A stretch of 64,000 nt of DNA from Sminthopsis crassicaudata (lineage: Eukaryota): positions 69,896,937 to 69,960,936 of the forward strand of contig NC_133617.1 in the NCBI RefSeq assembly GCF_048593235.1. The letters run 5' to 3'. The position numbers and the translations under genes were made by a program. A model generated the notes under the pieces. That model was not told the origin of the DNA. It did not search any database and saw only the letters and a list, made by a program, of their open reading frames with translations. Positions 16,919-63,012 of this stretch are shown piece after piece (the stretch's first letter is position 1; each line of letters starts with the position of its first letter).

Positions 16919-17977
16919 ATTAAAAGAAAAATCTCTGATGTGTGTATGTATGTATGAATCTGTCTAAATGTCTCTGTGTTCATGCATCTGTCTAATATGG
17001 GGGTTTGAGTAGGGGGATTCCCTCCTTACTGGATTCTGTCATTGGGGAAAATGGGAGGTCATTATCATATCCTAGGCTGGAGTCCTAGAAGGTATCTTAA
17101 AACATCTAGTCCAACCTACTAATTTACAAAAGAGAAAACTGAGATGAGGTCCTGACCCCAGGATTGAATGAGTTAATAGTTGTAAAGCACTTGTGCCAAC
17201 CTTTTAAAAGTGCTCAATAAATTCTAGCTCTTATTGCTTCTACCTCCAAATTCAGTGTTCCTGCCCTATGTTGTTGGTCTTAGAGCTGAAAGAGGCCTTA
17301 GAGACCACCGAGTCCTTTTCCCTATATCTTTGGGAAAGGGCTGTTTTCACTTCAGGATGTCAGTCATCTGTTCCCCCCTCCCCCAAAAAAAGGTTGAATT
17401 AAATGATCAAGAGATCCTCCTTCCATCTATGGACTCAATTATGATGTCATTACTCTGCTGGGCCTCAGTTTTCCCACCTGAAAATTAAGGTCCATCTGCA
17501 ATCCATTAACCATCGATTATGGCTAGGGGTCCCTTCTGCCCCAATGTTTTATGTTTCTAAATTGCCTCCTCTCCCTGGGCCTCAGTTTCCTACTTTAACA
17601 TGTGGTTATAAACTGCCAATCCCTGGGGAAATCTTGAGAATGGCGGTAGTTCTTTTGAAAAGGCAGATATGTTTCTGGGCAAGGAGAGTGAAGCAGCATA
17701 GGTAAATATGAGTATATAAATAGGTATATATGAGAGAGAAAGTGAACCCGAACATGGAGCGTGCTATTCCGCGGCGCGTGGCTGCTGGGAGAGAAGCTCA
17801 ACCCTGACCTGGCGCGTGTTGACATTCAAATGAGGCCCGGCCCCTCGCCCCAGCCTCCCTTCTGTGGTAGTGGGAGTCGGCAAGCAGAAAGCCTGGGAGC
17901 CTGCTGCCCCGGAAAGCTGGGGAGGATTCTCCACTGGGGGAGGAGGGTCTAGTGCGGCCTCCCCAGTTATCTCCCCC

Positions 17978-18315
17978 ATGGCCAGCGAGCCCTGGTTCGG
18001 GGGGCTTCTGCCTACCGGAGTCCGAGACTCCCTCCCAGCAGGAGACTCGGTCCCCGGACCCGCCCCTACCCCACACGGTGGAATTGAATCCCCTTGGCCT
18101 GTGGTCCCTAGTCGAGCAGGGGCTCCGGCAGATGCTGAGCCTGGGGGGCCTGTCCCAGGGCAGCCTCTGGCTTCAGCCCCGCTGCCTGGCCCGCCCCAAG
18201 CCCCCGCCCCCGGCCCTGCCCTACTGCCTCTGGAAAGTATGTTCAGCCCCATCACGGAGCAGCTCCGCTACCTGCTCAAGAAAGCGGAGGATTTCCAGAG
18301 CTACCTGCTCTACAG
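17978..18315 (+). CDS. C19orf67: C19orf67 (UPF0575) exon 1
   Basis: MASEPWF...[25 protein letters not shown]|gtgat, 338 bp, matching recalled human [24 protein letters not shown]. Confidence 0.88.
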
Positions 18316-19756: not shown

Positions 19757-20242
19757 GTGAGTCTCCCTGACTCACCATCATTACCATTTAAAATTTCCTT
19801 CCTTCAGAAAAAGACCTCTAAATCAAATCCTGAGTACTTTTCACTCCTAATGAAAATCCCAGTCTCCCTAGTCTAGGCTGCCCCTAAAGAAAATCGAAAC
19901 AAAAGCATGTATCCTTCCACCAAAAGGTGGCCTGAGCTCTGTGTTGGAAGTCAAGACACCTGGCTTCAATTTCCAGCTCTGACATTAGAGTGATGAGTCA
20001 CTTCAGTTCCCTGGGCCTGTTTTCTAATCTTTAAAATGAGAAGGAATATTATTTGTACTACCTGAGACTTAGAAGTTGTATGACTGTGGCCAATAAATTA
20101 GCCTTCCAAATTCAGGTTTCCCCACCCAAAAATGAGAATAATAATACACTGGCTCATTCAAAATCCTATTGGGGAAAACCTAGAAAACTGCTAGAGAAGA
20201 TGCTATTTTTGCTAAAGTCCCTCTTTACAAATACTTCAGTGA

Positions 20243-20505: not shown

Positions 20506-21000
<495 letters not shown>

Positions 21001-21339
21001 GCCCTCGGTAGCTCTCGGTTCTGGCTACATGGGGAAATGGGGGATGGGTAGGAGAGGGACGCGGATCCTTCTCCAGCCCTCGAACCCGCAGGCAGCTTAG
21101 GCAGGGGAAGACGAGGACGCGGCGATTCCCTCAAGACTTGTATAGATAGTTGTGGATTTAATAAAGAGAAAGAATTCAGAGGTGCCTCAGTCTGAATAGC
21201 GCCGGAGAAGCAAGCTAGTCCTTCCCGTCGAGTAAGGTCGGCAAAACTGGAGAGGGGGAAGGGGTGGAGATGGGGGCGGGCGAACTACCTAGGGATTGAA
21301 AGGGAGTGGTACATAATCCCAAACGCGGAGGGAGGGCTG

Positions 21340-22330
21340 AGGGTGGCGCATGCTCAAACGAACACTGGAAGCCAAACGGAAGCACCCCGACCCATACACT
21401 TCCGGAAGTGGGAGTCCTAGTCACGAAGTTGATTGATAGGACCGCGGTCCTTTCCGTAGCCTGGCCGGTCTGGTTAACTGCGAGACCACGGAACAGGGCT
21501 TCTAAAAGGAATGCAGCGGAGGGGATCACGTTTTAGCCGTGAACGATCTCTTTCGGGAAAAGGCTGCTTCCAGATGTAACAGAAAGATTCCTGTATTGGG
21601 AGAAACAGGACCCGGGTTCGAATTTTTGCTCTGCTACAAAGTTGCTGTGTCACTCTAATGGGGTAGTGGGTGGGAGAGAGACGGGAGAGCCCTTTCTTTC
21701 CTCCAGAATCCCACACCCCGCCGGGAAGTAGAGAGATTGGCTGGTTAATTTCCGCCTTAGTTTCTTCCTCTGTAAACATAACTCTTAACTTGGCTGCCTC
21801 CAGATGTAATAGAAAGATTCCTGTATTGGGAGAAATAGGATCGGGTTCGAATTTTTGCTCTGCTACAAAGTTGCTGTGTCACTCTAATGGGGTGGGAGAG
21901 AGACGGGAGAGCCCCATTCCTTCCTCCAGGATCACACACCCAGCCGGGAAGTAGATTGGCTGGTTAATTTCCGCCTTAGTTTCTTCCTCTGTAAACAGAG
22001 CTCTTAACCTGGCTGCCCAACGTAGCATTTAATGACCTCCAAGGTCCCTTCCAGCTCTGGCCTCTAAAGGACTACGATTCCCATTGTGCCGCGCGAGAGC
22101 CAGGCCTATCATGTGTCCTGGTTTGTTTCCCAGCCGCAGGAGTAGGCTGGGAACCGGGTGTAGGAACCTCTGTCTCAGATTCCCGCCTGGGTATGGATGG
22201 CAATTGATGCCTCCCTTTTTGCCGAGGGGTGAACAGGCTCCATAGCATCCGCCCTTCCCCTGCAAGGGTCGCGGTTATATCTTCCGGTTAAATCTGCGTG
22301 GGCTGAGACCAGAGTTGCTGTCCCCGGAAA
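21340..22330. promoter_or_regulatory. Orphan CpG-rich housekeeping-type promoter region
   Basis: NRF1-like GCGCATGCTC at 21346, perfect ETS palindrome CACTTCCGGAAGTG at 21397-21410, ZNF143/THAP11-type ACTACGATTCCCATTGTGC at 22071-22089, CTTCCGG at 22281, two inverted CCAAT boxes. Confidence 0.65.
21562..22017. repeat. Tandem duplication, two copies of about 230 and 219 bp
   Basis: GGCTGCYTCCAGATGTAAYAGAAAGATTCCTGTATTGGGAGAAA starts at 21562 and again at 21792. The copies are highly similar throughout, with short indels. Confidence 0.95.
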
Positions 22331-23549
22331 CCTCGGCTGGCCCCTGGACTTGAAGTAGCCGAGCCGCTCCCGGACGCCTCCCTGTGGCCGCAGTGGAACT
22401 CGCATCTCAGCGTCTGCTCTATTCAGACGAATCTTGCTCGTAATCGTGGGTCTCCCTCCCCTCCCCCACCCATCTGGTTTAGGAGTCCCCAGGTTTAAGA
22501 AGTCAAGGGTCACAGAGCTGGAAGAGATCTAACCCAAAAGATTCCAACCCGAAATCGGACATGTATCCTTCTCTCTCTGCGAAGAGATCTGTAGTGAAGA
22601 AAAGCTAATTCCTTTCTAAGGCATTCCCTTCAGCTTTCTAAATCTGATTACTGGACAGTGTTCTATATAGGCAAAAGCTAGGGGATTTCGTCAGCATGAG
22701 GGGGAACTCCTCCACCAATGTAAATTTCAACCAGCATGTGATTGATAAAATGGAGGGGAGAAGAGAAGGAAGCAAGCATCTGTCAATCAATGAATGCACT
22801 AGTCTCGAAGATTTGGTGCTGAAAATGAACTCAGAAGGTTTTTAGTCCAAACCCTGCATTTCACAGATTTGGAAACTGAAAATTAAAGAGACAACGGGGC
22901 ACTTGCCCATGGTCACACAGGCAGTAAGCAGCAGAGATTCTCTGAACCAATGCTTAAAATAAGACTATTAGTCCGAAGAGGTGCCTGAGATGCTCACGAG
23001 TTCAATGACTTGTATCTGGTCCCCCGCTAAATGTGCCGCCTCATTATTTCTGGCTCTGCCCTTTGGTTTTAATATATCTAATCCCTCTTCCCAAGGACAA
23101 TCCTTCAAACATTTGAAGACACTTATCACTTCCCCAAGTCTTCACTTTTCCAGGCTAACCATCTGCAGTTACTTCAGCAGAGCCTGCCAAGTCATCAGCT
23201 TTATAGAAGCATTCTTGACCTTCAAATATTCAAAGTCCTTCCTCAAATGTGGTACAAATGGTACACTTTGCTATTTAAAATCTTGCATTTTGTAACATCT
23301 CTTGTGCTGTTGCTCACTTCTGTTACCATTTAACTTTTTGTCTTGTCTTGAGAGCTAGATAAGTCCCTTGAGAGTTCTTATGGATCCCCCACGATATCTT
23401 ATAATAGGCTAAAAACAGCAGATGTTCAATGAATGTATGTTGCTGACTGATGGATGTTCAGTCCAGGCTGAAAAGGAGAGCATTCTAAGAAGAAGCAGAC
23501 AGCAAGAAGAATAATAGGCTTTCTACCTTTGTGGAAACCAGTCTGATAG

Positions 23550-24990: not shown

Positions 24991-26605
24991 GAGGGGGGGG
25001 TAGAAGGATTCCCCCCAAGTTTCTAACCAACTGTTGTATTCTCCCTCTATACTAATTGGGGCTTATTTTTTAGCTTTTGTTTTTCTACTTCCACCACTTA
25101 AGACTTAAGTGCTAAATACATTTTCTTGGTCAAATGAATGGATTTGGCATTTGAGCTAGGTCCTGAAGCAGAAGTAGATTTTCAACAGGTAGCTAGGAAA
25201 GGAGGGCAGACAAAAGAAACAGTATGAGCAAAGAAATATTCAGAGGGAAAAATCCCGTATGCATTTGGGATCTTCATTGAGCCAGCACTTATTAGGCATC
25301 TGGGAGATACAAGACTGAAAAATAACATTCTTCTCCTCACAGACGTTACAATCTAAGGAATGTGGAAGAGGGGAGAGTTAGTATGATATATACACAAATA
25401 ATTGTTATAAGAGATGGAATGTATAAAGAAGATAATTAAGGAAAATAATCTAAGGAATGTGAGAGGATCAGGGTAATGTTTAGCTGAAAACAGTAAAAAC
25501 TTCCAAAAGAAGGTGGCACCCAAGTAGGGTTTTCAAGGAAGAGAATATCCTGCACAGAGATGAGGAAAACACATTAAGGATGGCTATTGCCTCTCCAGAA
25601 TTAATATGGGAAGATAGGAGATACCAAGTTGAAATACTCTTGTATAGATAAAATGGAGCTTTTGGAGGGGAAGGACTGGAAAGCCTTGAATGCCACAATA
25701 AAGAGTTTGTATTTTATCCTATATAAAATGAGGAATCAACTGAAGGATTTTGGTTCAAAGACCTGACATGCTCCCTTCCAAACATGAGGAAAATTTATTT
25801 GTCAGTAATGGATTGGAGAGGGGAGAAACTGAAAACCTGAATACCAATTCAGAGACAATGTGCACAGTGGAGAGTTGACTATCTTAGTTTTGAATGTGTC
25901 AACTATTTAGGGATGACTACGGGCAAATCACTTAATCCCCAGAGTCTTGGTTTTCTCTTGTAAAAAGGTAGGATTCCATTGGCTCCCCATCAGCTCTCAA
26001 TCCTATGTTAGTAGCTGTATGTGTCTGTCCTAAGAGTGCCTACAGTCCATCTTCCAATCTCTCTTTCAGCTTCAGTTTTTCAAGGGGAGAGGAAAGGGGG
26101 AAATCCAATTGAGATTGGACTTCCTATTTTTGGCCACGAGGAGGCAGCATGAGACAAGACCTAGAGACTCCAGCTGCAGGGGATGAGGCTTCCCCACCCT
26201 GATCATCCTAGAATACGCTGGGGGGGAGGGGGGGAAGGGGAAATAGAACTCTGAGCACCGGGCAGCCCAGAAAAGAAGGATATGAACTGATCTGTCCCTT
26301 CCTCCTCCTCCCACGACTGTGGTCCCAGGGAACAAACTGGGCAAGGGCAGCAGATAAGGGGCTGCCAATTGCCTCCTAAGTAACAAGAGCCAGATTCCAA
26401 AGGGCTCCTCCCGTAGCTTTCCCAGGCCCTGATGCTCTCCCCCACGCCCCGCATCCCACCACCTCCTCGGGTTAGCTAGAATTAGACCTACCAGAAATGT
26501 TTTGGTTGCTCTTCCCCCCCCCCCCCCACACCTTCTTAGGCAAGGTAACACAAAGTCGCTGAAGAATGAAGAGCTACAGACAAACAACCCTTGAAAGAAG
26601 GGGTG

Positions 26606-26611
26606 TTTATT
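26606..26611 (-). terminator. MISP3: MISP3 polyadenylation signal
   Basis: AATAAA on the minus strand (plus TTTATT) about 370 nt after the stop. Confidence 0.7.
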
Positions 26612-28019: not shown

Positions 28020-28327
28020 CTGCAAGGAAAGGGGGCAAATAAAGTAATGGGGAGCAGCCTCTCCGCCGTCTCACTTCGGTGATTTTCCTGTTTTGTGGCC
28101 CAGAAACGTTCCTCCTCCCCCAGCCTGGCGCCCGGGGCCATAGTAGTCCACGCCCTACTAAATGTAAATAGAAGCTAGAGGCCTATTCAGGTCCTCTCCT
28201 ACCCGATTCCCTTGGCACGGATTCCCTTAGTCCGTAAAGGGGGAGTGGGATTGGGGGTTCGAAGGCGGAAGATCTGAAACTCGCCCAGGGAAGCCCGAGA
28301 GGGGAGGGGGAGGACCCGGCATCTTAC

Positions 28328-29270
28328 CGGTGAGACTCGGGGTCGGCTCCTTGAACTCTGAGGTCCCATAGATGCTGCGCCTCTGGCGCTGTAGCTCCCG
28401 CTCCCTCTGGTGAACTTCTTGAACCTCCTGCTCTAGCAGCGACAACTGGACTCGACGGGTCGGAGTCTGAGCCGTAGCGGGGGCGGGGGTGGTTGTGGGG
28501 GCCGGGGCCAAAGCTAGATCTGGGGCCGAGGACACAATTGGGACCGGCACCGGAGACCGAGCACCTGGAGCTGCTGCCGAAGTGTGAGCTGGAATCGGTG
28601 CGCTCACTGCAGAGGCTGAAGCCGGGGCCGGGGCACGTGGGGCCGGGGCCAGGGCAGGAGCCGGGGCTGGGGCAGGGGCAGGAGCCGGGGCTGGAGCTGG
28701 GGCTAGGGCCAGGTCTGGCGTCCGGGCAACTACTGGAGCCGGGTTTCCGGCCGATGCCGCTGCTGGAACGGGAGCTGGAATAGGAGCCTGAGCTAGAACT
28801 GGTGGCCGAAGCCGGCTGCGATGCTCCAGAACCACCACATGGGCGGCGCCACTGGCCTCGGTGAACGAAGGGCCCCGGCCCACCGTCTCTACCCGAGAAG
28901 GAGCGCCCCCAGCCTCAAAAACCAGCTTGCGCTGGCTCAGCGACTGCGGCCCCTGGCCGCTCTCCTGGCCACTGCAGGGCCCCGAGCCCAGGCGCACCAG
29001 CGCCTCCTCCCGGCGGGCTTCCCGCGCGATGTCGCGCTGCATCTGGGCGCCTGCTCGAGCGCGCTCCACGTCCCGGGGCAGTCCAGGCCCCGGTCCCGGC
29101 AGCAAGCTAAGGATGGGCCGGAGGCGCAGCTCCACCAGCTCCCCGCTGGCGAAGCTAGGACTCAAACCCCGGCTCCGTCGCAGACTCGCCTCGCGCTCCT
29201 GGCTCTGACGGATCTCCCGCTCAATTGGGGTCTCGGCGGCAGTCGCGGCGGCAGCCGCGGGGGTCTCCAT
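28328..29270 (-). CDS. MISP3: MISP3 main coding exon, in a CpG island; alternative in-frame ATG at 29318
   Basis: MET...ETPIEREIRQSQEREASLRRSRGLSP...SLLEQEVQEVHQRERELQRQRRSIYGTSEFKEPTPSLT|gtaag. Confidence 0.9.
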
Positions 29271-29670
29271 GCCCAGCTCTGCGGCCGTGCCAGCGGTGGG
29301 CCGCGAGTTCTGAGACATTGAGAGCTACTGACCGTCGGCCCCGCCCGGCTCTCCTCTCCGGCCCGCCCCTGGCCTCCGGGAACTGCCCCTCCTCGCCCCG
29401 GGGGCAGGCCAGGCCCCGCCCCCTGCACCTGCCTGGACCTCGGCCCCGCCCCGAACGGCCCCCGACACAGCCGCCGCTGCCGCAATTGCAGCCCTCGAGT
29501 TCCTCCAGAGGCCCCGGGCACAGAGTTTAGCTCTTTGCCCTGTGCTGGGACACCCTCTTCTGCCCCTGGGCCCTCTGTCGGAATATAGTCTGTGAAACTG
29601 AGCCGGGCGATAATCCGATTGATACCACCTAGAAGAAGTTCCTTGACTTCTGTGGCCTTGGGCTGGGTAA

Positions 29671-29756
29671 GGGGCATTCTAGGGTGACATTCCAGAATGA
29701 AAAGAACCTTGAGGGGGCATTCTAGGGTGACATTCCAGAATGAAAAGAACCTTGAG
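29671..29756. repeat. Perfect 43-bp tandem duplication with TEAD/M-CAT-like sites
   Basis: GGGGCATTCTAGGGTGACATTCCAGAATGAAAAGAACCTTGAG at 29671-29713 and 29714-29756. Confidence 0.95.
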
Positions 29757-31179: not shown

Positions 31180-31800
31180 AATATCTATTGCCTCTGAAGA
31201 AAAGCTATGGCAAATCTAAAAAGCATAATATAGCAACTTAAAAAGTGGAGATATTGGGGCAGCTAGGTGGCGCAGTGGATAGAGTACCAGCCCTGAAATC
31301 AGGAGGACACGAGTTCAAATCTGGTCTTAGACATTTAACACTTCCTAGCTATGTGACCCTGGGCAAGTCACTTAACCCCAGCCTCAGGGGAAAAAAAAAC
31401 ATGGAGAATATCACCTTGCCAACAAAGATCCATATAATCAAAACTATGGTTTTTCCAGTAGCAATGTATGGCTGTGAGGAAAAAAGAAAAGCTGAGCACC
31501 ACAGAATTGTGGTGCTGGAGAAGTTTTCTGAAAATCCTTAGATGTCAAAGAGACAAATTAGTCAATGCCTACAGAAATTAATTCAGGCTATTCACTGACA
31601 GGTCAGATACTAAAGCTAACGTTTAAATTTTACTTTGGCCACAGTGAGAAGATGGAACTCATTGGAAAAGACCATAGAACTGGGGAAAATTGAAGGTGAA
31701 AGGAAAGGGAGATGGATAGTTATGAAAACAAGAAACATGAAATTGGACATGAACTTTGAGAGGTAGTGATATGTGATGGTTCAGGGGGGTCACAAAGACT
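31180..31800 (+). mobile_element. RTE/BovB-like LINE 3' remnant interrupted by a SINE (31256-31399)
   Basis: Translates as ITLPTKIHIIKTMVFPVAMYGCE, resembling the BovB RT C-terminus ITLPTKVRLVKAMVFPVVMYGCE. Confidence 0.75.
31256..31399 (+). mobile_element. Marsupial tRNA-derived SINE
   Basis: GGGGCAGCTAGGTGGCGCAGTGGATAGAG...GAGTTCAAAT... plus A tail. Confidence 0.9.
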
Positions 31801-36154: not shown

Positions 36155-36270
36155 CACTACTGCCACTACAACTACCACCACCATTACTACAACTACTACT
36201 ATCATTACTACCACTGCTACTGCTATTATCACTACTACCATTGTTACCACCACTATTACTCCTACTACCA
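36155..36270. repeat. Degenerate (ACT/ACC)n trinucleotide tract
   Basis: actactgccactacaactaccaccaccattactacaactactact... Confidence 0.9.
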
Positions 36271-36401
36271 GCTAACATTTACATAGCACCTATTATCTGC
36301 CAACTTTTGTATTATCTTATTTGAGACTCCATTTTATAGATGAGTAAACTGAGGCTCTAAGGAGGTTAAGTGGGCATGTCCAGGGTCACACAGCTAATAC
36401 A

Positions 36402-36543
36402 TTGTTTGCTGAGGCAAGTGGGGTTAGTGACTTGCCCAGGGTCACACAGCTAGGAAGTGTTAAGTGTCTGAGGACAGATTTGAACTCGGATCCTCCTGAC
36501 TTCAGGGCTGGGGCTCTATCTGCTATACCACCTAGCTGCCCCT
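36402..36543 (-). mobile_element. Marsupial tRNA-derived SINE nested in an older SINE
   Basis: Reverse complement of the same SINE family, with the head ending ...CCACCTAGCTGCCCC. Confidence 0.88.
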
Positions 36544-36600
36544 AGTTAGTACATTTTTGAGGCTAGATATGAACTCAGGTCTCCCTGACTCCACTATCTA

Positions 36601-62440: not shown

Positions 62441-63012
62441 CTAAAGAGAGAGAGAGGATGTGGACAGAGTGGTCAGTGAGGAGAAAATAGGGGGGAAGAT
62501 AGGGAGACTTCCTGGAAGAAGTCTGCATTAAGTTCAGGAGCAGTGTGGAACAAAGGAAATAGCTCTATGCCAGGAGCCAGGAAACCTGAGTTTTAGTCAC
62601 TAATTCACAGAGTGGCCTTGGGCCAGTACTTGTCCCCTTCTCTCAGCTTCTTAGTTTCTTCATCTGTAAAATGAAAGAACTGGACTATAATCTCTCAAAC
62701 TCTGTCTAGGACTAAATCCTATGCTGCTAAATTTTTTGTGTGACAAGTAAATTCCTTGTTTTTTATGGGCCTCAGTTTATTTATCTGTAAAATAATATGA
62801 TAATCTCTGATAATCTCTGAGGGCCTTTCCATAATTCTGTGATTCTGTGAGCAACACAGTGCTAGGTCAGAAGTCCTTGGGTGGTAGATTCCAGGATTAG
62901 CCACAGTGGACTGGCTGGAGACAGTGTTTCAAAGCCTTCCTAGGAAGGTGGAGTCTGAACCTGGATTAGGAGCCAATACAGAGGGATGAAGAAAAAGGGG
63001 ATAGATGTTTAC

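Follow-up and report, generated by a model that had tools for sequence, protein, structure and literature searches.

What does a CpG-rich segment carrying promoter-type motifs do when no gene starts in it? The question is raised by a locus in a 64,000-nucleotide stretch of the genome of the marsupial Sminthopsis crassicaudata (contig NC_133617.1; the whole stretch is hereafter called the window, and positions are counted from its first letter). Directly behind the 3' end of the gene C19orf67 lies a CpG island in which an earlier sequence-only reading had recognized a promoter of housekeeping grade to which no gene could be assigned. The analysis presented here suggests that this island is an ordinary orphan CpG-island promoter, probably giving rise to an unspliced and perhaps unstable non-coding RNA in one or both directions. 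Such an identity is probable, if only just. The composition of the island, its motifs, its repeat anatomy, the boundaries of the neighboring genes and the lack of an open reading frame (ORF), splice donor or known RNA family are direct observations.

A bipartite CpG island next to C19orf67

CpG islands were delimited with the thresholds of Gardiner-Garden and Frommer (length of at least 200 bp, GC content of at least 0.50, ratio of observed to expected CpG (o/e) of at least 0.60) and with those of Takai and Jones (500 bp, 0.55 and 0.65, respectively). Both definitions recover the island, in both cases as two lobes: 20931-21730 and 22091-22600 for the former, 20861-21720 and 21931-22570 for the latter. 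The CpG o/e across 21186-22470 is 0.66, against 0.28 for the whole window and 0.19-0.28 for the flanks. The enrichment previously described as a CpG-rich kilobase is thus real, but it is bipartite rather than uniform, the middle having an o/e of 0.39. The left edge of the interval also had to be corrected, the left lobe beginning inside the terminal exon of C19orf67 and covering the stop codon and 3' untranslated region (UTR) of this gene. The window contains three much larger CpG islands elsewhere, and 3 kb separate this island from the nearest other one.

The genes on both sides, C19orf67 and MISP3, are convergent as had been proposed, with 3' ends located about 4.6-5.4 kb apart. The island abuts C19orf67 only: MISP3 is 4-5 kb off and not adjacent, its coding end (26984) being separated from the island by 4.5 kb. 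The claim that no flanking gene starts here holds, with the ATG of C19orf67 near 17978 and that of MISP3 at 29318, 3.2 and 7 kb from the island, respectively. These gene models were derived in this analysis from the window sequence. On such models, the island overlaps no gene start, the property by which orphan islands were defined by Illingworth et al. (2010). In human and mouse, orphans make up about half of the CpG islands (PMC2944787).

Predicted transcription factor binding sites

At the junction of the central repeat and the right lobe, positions 22071-22095 carry a predicted composite site for ZNF143 and THAP11. The site is of the SBS2 type, defined as a 25-bp sequence in which ACTACAN is followed by an 18-bp SBS. 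It is identical at 21 of 25 bases to the probe ACTACAATTCCCATTATGCACCGCG, which binds both ZNF143 and THAP11 in vitro (PMC3627581). The best match to this probe reached 17/25 in 300 first-order Markov sequences modelled on the island, and 16-17 elsewhere in the window. The site additionally fits the M4 promoter-motif consensus ACTAYRNNNCCCR perfectly (PMC5006282) and the THAP11 site ACTACANNTCCCA with one mismatch.

All the motifs listed by the sequence-only reading were found at the positions that it gave, and a GC box of the SP1 type was added to them (Table 1). Their concentration in the island, which represents 2% of the window length, is marked. The sequence CCGGAAGY occurs twice in the 64 kb scanned, both times within a perfect 14-bp palindrome of the left lobe; four of the ten CCGGAA sites and one of the two GCGCATGC sites of the window are in the island. 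The motif scan of the island detected no CTCF site, cAMP response element (CRE), TATA box or CCAAT box of NF-Y grade. All four CCAAT pentamers of the island are within the central repeat described below. The two CCAAT boxes previously reported are consequently present as pentamers but are copies of a single site in this repeat, below NF-Y grade. What stands of the proposed promoter-type set is the predicted GC box, NRF1 half-site, ETS/GABP-type sites and SBS2-type site, in an island devoid of genes. They form two clusters separated by 0.7-0.9 kb because the repeat and its duplication lie between them.

HCFC1-bound active CpG-island promoters have been defined by ZNF143/THAP11, GABP and YY1 motifs (PMC3668359). 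The association of GABP-type ETS sites with an SBS2 site within a CpG island is the signature of such promoters. In the dunnart itself, the regulatory elements that have been mapped are enriched for NRF1, ZBTB33 and RONIN motifs (PMC12563553).

A duplicated retroposon and the methylation history of the island

The center of the island is a tandem duplication of a unit of about 225 bp (21562-21791 and 21792-22017) with a GGCTGCC microhomology at the junction. The unit derives from a tRNA-derived short interspersed nuclear element (SINE) of the MIR type, in which a tRNA-like head with a B-box, a MIR core block and a CR1/L2-like tail block are colinear. The head, B-box included, can be aligned with eight further SINEs of the window, and counterparts of the core and tail blocks were found at 62650, 60538, 52747 and 27152. 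The element was typed from these window copies, down to the MIR type. Both tandem copies contain the same unusual insertion of about 75 nt inside the unit, which indicates a duplication and not two independent insertions. They differ at about 12 of about 215 aligned positions (about 5.6% substitutions). These differences are unevenly distributed: a 52-nt stretch containing the B-box and a T5 run (21613-21664 and 21842-21893) is 100% identical while the rest differs by about 5-6%, which could be due to chance, gene conversion or constraint.

Several features of the sequence argue for a long-term hypomethylation of the island in the germline. Firstly, CpG is nearly undepleted in the unique lobes, with a background o/e of 0.28. 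Secondly, the CpG of the B-box (TTCGAA) was kept in both copies of this old SINE while the eight other aligned heads read TTCAAAT or a variant; the comparison is a soft one since some of these heads are from younger subfamilies, in which the CpG may already be missing from the consensus. Thirdly, none of the about 12 differences between the tandem copies is a change from CpG to TpG or CpA: five shared CpGs are intact and a sixth differs by a transversion. The probability of such a retention in methylated DNA would be roughly 0.003-0.05, a rough calculation with no fitted model, which assumes CpG transitions to be 5-10 times faster than other changes.

The SBS2 site starts 12 nt past the last recognizable tail block of the SINE. 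Other SINE tails of the window run on with TCTATG- or CTAC-like sequence, and the ACTAC half of the site may for this reason come from the SINE tail. The similarity is weak and the idea is a lead. Retroelement-borne SBS2 sites are carried by MLT1J elements (PMC3627581).

Search for a gene or RNA product

The longest ORF of the island starting with an ATG has 101 codons, is located on the minus strand and runs through the SINE. This length is reached by 27% of the simulated sequences, in agreement with the earlier statement that no convincing ORF is present. The microprotein that had been considered as a possible product finds no support, and no ORF exceeds the length expected by chance. With an approximate splice-donor matrix, no 5' splice site scoring at least 6.5 was found on the plus strand before 23890, and the first strong donor on the minus strand appears only at 19775. 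Leftward RNAs would be terminated after about 250 nt by the minus-strand poly(A) signals ATTAAA at 22033 and 21162. On the plus strand, no poly(A) signal occurs between 21166 and 22882. Further to the right, coding exons were sought between the island and MISP3, and none of the ORFs tested between 22972 and 26785 matched a Pfam family.

Known RNA families were not found either. The Rfam search gave sub-threshold noise only at E values up to 1 (HOTTIP_3 with 17.8 bits for a gathering score of 50, mir-4077 with an E value of 0.65), ARAGORN detected no tRNA gene, and the folding of six 150-nt segments on both strands revealed no notable structure (z-scores of -0.2 to -1.8). Genes of the small nuclear RNA (snRNA) type are the other classic home of ZNF143, and the sequence-only reading had alluded to them. 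They would be recognized by a distal SBS1 site with an octamer, a proximal sequence element (PSE) near -55, a TATA box in the case of RNA polymerase III (Pol III) and a known small RNA downstream. This option was rejected: the site of the island is of the SBS2 type, while all 56 snRNA and Pol III type-3 sites are SBS1-only (PMC3627581), and the island contains neither an octamer, nor a PSE at up to four mismatches from the consensus, nor an Rfam family. A bidirectional housekeeping promoter would be expected to serve two divergent genes starting no more than about 1 kb apart; here no gene start, no ORF beyond chance length and no donor was found in either direction. A duplicated promoter of a neighboring gene was also considered and rejected, the window containing no paralogous segment.

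Proposed activity of the island

The above observations can be assembled into a model in which hypomethylation, factor binding and transcription are what we infer from the sequence. About 1.3-1.7 kb of DNA directly 3' of the C19orf67 poly(A) site would be kept unmethylated in the germline. SP1-type, NRF1 and ETS/GABP factors would bind the left lobe, and ZNF143 or THAP11-HCFC1 would bind the SBS2 site of the right lobe, along with ETS factors. The bound factors and the unmethylated CpGs, the latter via CFP1/SET1, would generate a nucleosome-poor region marked by trimethylation of histone H3 lysine 4 (H3K4me3), on which RNA polymerase II (RNAPII) would initiate. The products would most likely be short or unspliced non-coding RNAs, because no usable 5' splice site is available in either direction and poly(A) signals occur early on the minus strand. 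One of them would possibly be antisense to the 3' end of C19orf67, and none would correspond to a protein-coding or snRNA-type gene. Concerning its history, an old MIR-type SINE lies in the middle of the island, and the later duplication of its body pushed the lobes about 0.5 kb apart. The SINE tail region adjoins the SBS2 site and may have supplied part of it.

An orphan promoter is preferred because the combination of motifs is that of HCFC1-bound promoters and because orphan islands frequently initiate transcription: 42-44% of them do, or 60% when H3K4me3 is counted, which are minimum estimates according to the authors (PMC2944787). Their products are expected to be mostly non-coding (PMC2944787).

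Several observations weigh against this preference. The CpG density is moderate, with 4.9 CpG per 100 bp compared to about 11 per 100 bp in the SAMD1 island of the same window, a level that does not justify the term housekeeping-grade previously used, and H3K4me3 scales with CpG density (PMC2944787). The duplicated SINE, with its o/e of 0.39, occupies about 40% of the interval originally delimited. The NRF1 site is a half-site, with two mismatches to the full 12-mer, and the CCAAT pentamers are one base off the extended NF-Y consensus. The plus strand lacks an early splice donor, and GC skew indicates no clear direction, being uninformative for the control islands of the window too. A motif match alone is moreover no proof of occupancy.

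Table 1. Position of the CpG-island segments, predicted sites, repeats and gene ends discussed in the text
Feature	Position	Strand	Remark
Left CpG-island lobe	20931-21730	.	GC 0.57, CpG o/e 0.72
Left unique core	21186-21561		CpG o/e 0.91
Central repeat	21562-22075		CpG o/e 0.39; fails both island definitions
Right CpG-island lobe	22091-22600	.	GC 0.57, CpG o/e 0.64
Right unique part	22076-22470		CpG o/e 0.68
Flanks	outside lobes and central repeat		CpG o/e 0.19-0.28
GC box (GGGGCGGGC), SP1-type	21273-21281	+	absent from the earlier list of motifs
NRF1-like half-site GCGCATGC	21346-21353	.	one of two in the window
ETS-like site ACGGAAGC	21376-21383	+	sequence
Perfect 14-bp palindrome CACTTCCGGAAGTG	21397-21410	.	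two overlapping CCGGAAGT ETS/GABP-type sites
MIR-type SINE body, tandem copy 1	21562-21791	+	tRNA-like head, B-box GGTTCGAAT and T5 run, ~75-nt insert, MIR core
MIR-type SINE, tandem copy 2	21792-22070	+	runs into the 3' tail block of the family (22041-22058)
Predicted SBS2-type ZNF143/THAP11 composite site ACTACGATTCCCATTGTGCCGCGCG	22071-22095	+	21/25 to validated SBS2 probe; M4 fit
ETS core (TTCCGG on plus strand)	22282-22287	-	
ETS core CCGGAA	22324-22329	+	
Second MIR-type SINE, tail only, opposite orientation	22480-22545	-	right border of the island
C19orf67 stop codon (TGA)	20998-21000	+	sequence
C19orf67 poly(A) signal AATAAA	21160-21165	+	unique island DNA begins ~25 bp downstream
Likely MISP3 poly(A) signal, first AATAAA past the MISP3 stop	26606-26611	-	4.1 kb from the island

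Alternative explanations

Two further options of the sequence-only reading, a promoter-like enhancer and the relic of a lost gene, are weighed here with other explanations. The island could be a promoter-like regulatory element without a product of its own, either an orphan CpG island boosting an enhancer or a promoter, or an anchor or boundary based on ZNF143, and possibly on TFIIIC bound to the B-boxes, between the convergent C19orf67 and MISP3. Any RNA would then be incidental. Such a function is rather improbable. ZNF143 sites are also active in chromatin looping (PMC7154149), and poised enhancers can be boosted by orphan CpG islands (bioRxiv 10.1101/2020.08.05.237768); in the dunnart face, H3K4me3 peaks located more than 3 kb from a transcription start site (TSS) are mostly weak and were read as enhancer-associated (PMC12563553). 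Also in favor of such an element, the pattern of splice donors and poly(A) signals is gene-like in neither direction, and the SINE copies have kept two B-box-like GGTTCGAAT sites without any difference, within the stretch of complete identity. Nevertheless, the island contains no CTCF-type site, the B-box matches at 9 of 11 bases without a credible A-box or a tRNA-like gene detected by ARAGORN, and only 1.6% of enhancers are found within 100 bp of an orphan CpG island (PMC2944787).

A more elaborate version of the orphan promoter would make it a product of the marsupial lineage built in part from a retroposon. The SINE tail would have supplied the ACTAC half of the SBS2 site, the duplication would have remodelled the island, and the promoter would drive an unannotated lineage-specific long non-coding RNA or an antisense RNA of the C19orf67 3' end. 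Taken as a whole, this scenario is unlikely.

More doubtful still is the possibility that the island belongs to the 3' end of C19orf67, as a G-rich termination or R-loop zone or as the promoter of an antisense RNA regulating this gene. The terminal exon and 3' UTR indeed contain the start of the island (20931), about 25 bp separate the poly(A) signal from its unique part, and a minus-strand transcript initiated near 21400 would run directly into the 3' UTR. Such a transcript would however be stopped after about 240 nt by the ATTAAA at 21162, the next strong donor being 1.6 kb off at 19775. The GC skew reaches +0.35 to +0.38 on the C19orf67 sense strand between 21100 and 21299, but this measure is uninformative even for the control islands of the window, and a terminator would have no need of ETS and SBS2 sites.

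Another candidate is a relic promoter: its gene would have been lost, moved or pseudogenised in the lineage, and the island would have outlasted the decayed exons. The motif set is typical of housekeeping genes and the DNA on the right side is repeat-rich and CpG-poor. However, no ORF of the island exceeds chance length, Pfam matches are absent from the ORFs tested between 22972 and 26785, and the window contains no paralogous segment. Other mammals are not known to have a gene between C19orf67 and MISP3 either, which contributes to making a relic very improbable. Finally, a patch without function, arising by chance or maintained neutrally (e.g. by biased gene conversion or a spill-over of low methylation from neighbors) with its motifs unoccupied, is scarcely likely: the CpG density is moderate and the motifs were chosen by eye after the fact, but the 21/25 SBS2 match and the 14-bp ETS palindrome are each far above chance, spill-over is unlikely with the nearest other island 3 kb away, and sustained protection is required for CpGs to survive in an old SINE and in each of its two copies.

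Neighboring genes and other features of the window

The gene order of the window is a PRKACA intron, SAMD1 (+), C19orf67 (+) and MISP3 (-). The terminal exon of C19orf67 encodes the end of a DUF3314 domain (Pfam PF11771, E value of 2.4e-11, profile positions 129-162 of 162). A small separate CpG island (17651-17930) is located just 5' of the C19orf67 ATG and is presumably the promoter of this gene, so that the downstream island is unnecessary for explaining C19orf67 expression. A search of papers dealing with C19orf67 and MISP3 and of dunnart chromatin immunoprecipitation sequencing supplements yielded no mention of the locus.

The MISP3 exons were located by tblastn with eight marsupial MISP3 proteins at 29318-28317, 28032-27949 and 27064-26984, with the stop codon at 26983-26981 on the minus strand. 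Compared with MISP3 of wallaby, koala, Dromiciops and possum, the MISP3 exon found here shows 72-77% identity, in keeping with a marsupial genome. A second candidate poly(A) signal is present at 25799-25794, in addition to that of Table 1, and about 15 consecutive G residues of the minus strand (26515-26532) fall between the two, inside the probable MISP3 3' region. The large MISP3 exon (28230-29318, minus strand) encodes about 330 residues, among them a long Ala/Pro-rich stretch of the APAPAP type at roughly 28560-28800. Marsupial MISP3 proteins have 304-430 residues compared to about 205-260 for most placental proteins among the matches listed, and the expansion of MISP3 therefore looks marsupial-wide. 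The N-terminal extension of koala MISP3 (residues 16-74) matches 29513-29677 on the minus strand with 59% identity. The matched segment is 5' of the ATG at 29318, an indication that this genome, too, has an alternative coding exon upstream or a longer isoform.

Elsewhere in the window, a younger SINE subfamily with a tRNA head and A-rich tails is well preserved at 31251-31560, 36240-36548, 51190-51494, 54630-54940 and 56103-56410. Since the heads are about 80-90% alike, this subfamily was active fairly recently in the lineage. A run of 190 N at 53741-53930 corresponds to an assembly gap or to masked sequence.

Comparison with known systems

Mammalian genomes contain more than 10,000 orphan CpG islands. 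One more is not surprising in itself, and the value of the present one lies firstly in annotation, as it flags a probable unannotated transcription start beside C19orf67 in a marsupial genome. The locus also illustrates neatly how a SINE can be inserted and duplicated within a protected island, and a strong SBS2 site lies at the SINE edge.

The factor repertoire (ETS/GABP, NRF1, SP1 and ZNF143) is that of bidirectional housekeeping promoters, which differ from the island by the divergent gene pair that they serve, the island having no gene at all. Another likeness is found with the CpG-island promoters bound by ZNF143 and THAP11-HCFC1 through SBS2-type sites (PMC3627581, PMC3668359, PMC5006282). 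Both present a 25-bp site composed of an ACTAC-type extension and an SBS core, in an island setting and accompanied by GABP-type ETS sites. The dunnart sequence departs from these promoters by having G in place of A at position 6 of the THAP11 half, a change allowed by M4 and not by the ACTACA form, and by three mismatches in the ZNF143 half. M4 peaks at about 89 bp from TSSs (PMC5006282), whereas the predicted site described here has no annotated TSS nearby.

The transposon-derived SBS2 sites of MLT1J (PMC3627581) are comparable in that the dunnart site adjoins, or lies within, retroelement sequence. The element is however a SINE and not a long terminal repeat element, and a derivation from its tail is suggested by a weak similarity to other tails of the window. 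If the site were SINE-derived and bound, it would provide a marsupial case for retroelements seeding ZNF143/THAP11 sites.

Overall, the island most resembles in its setting the orphan CpG islands of Illingworth et al. (2010, PMC2944787). Like them, it is remote from gene starts and intergenic between transcription units, with a CpG density slightly below that of promoter islands, and it would belong to a class expected to consist of tissue-restricted promoters of non-coding RNA. That class was defined by non-methylation of the CAP-seq type, H3K4me3, RNAPII and CAGE, and the dunnart island by its sequence. In contrast with the islands on which the class was established, the host is here a marsupial and the island is split in two by a duplicated SINE.

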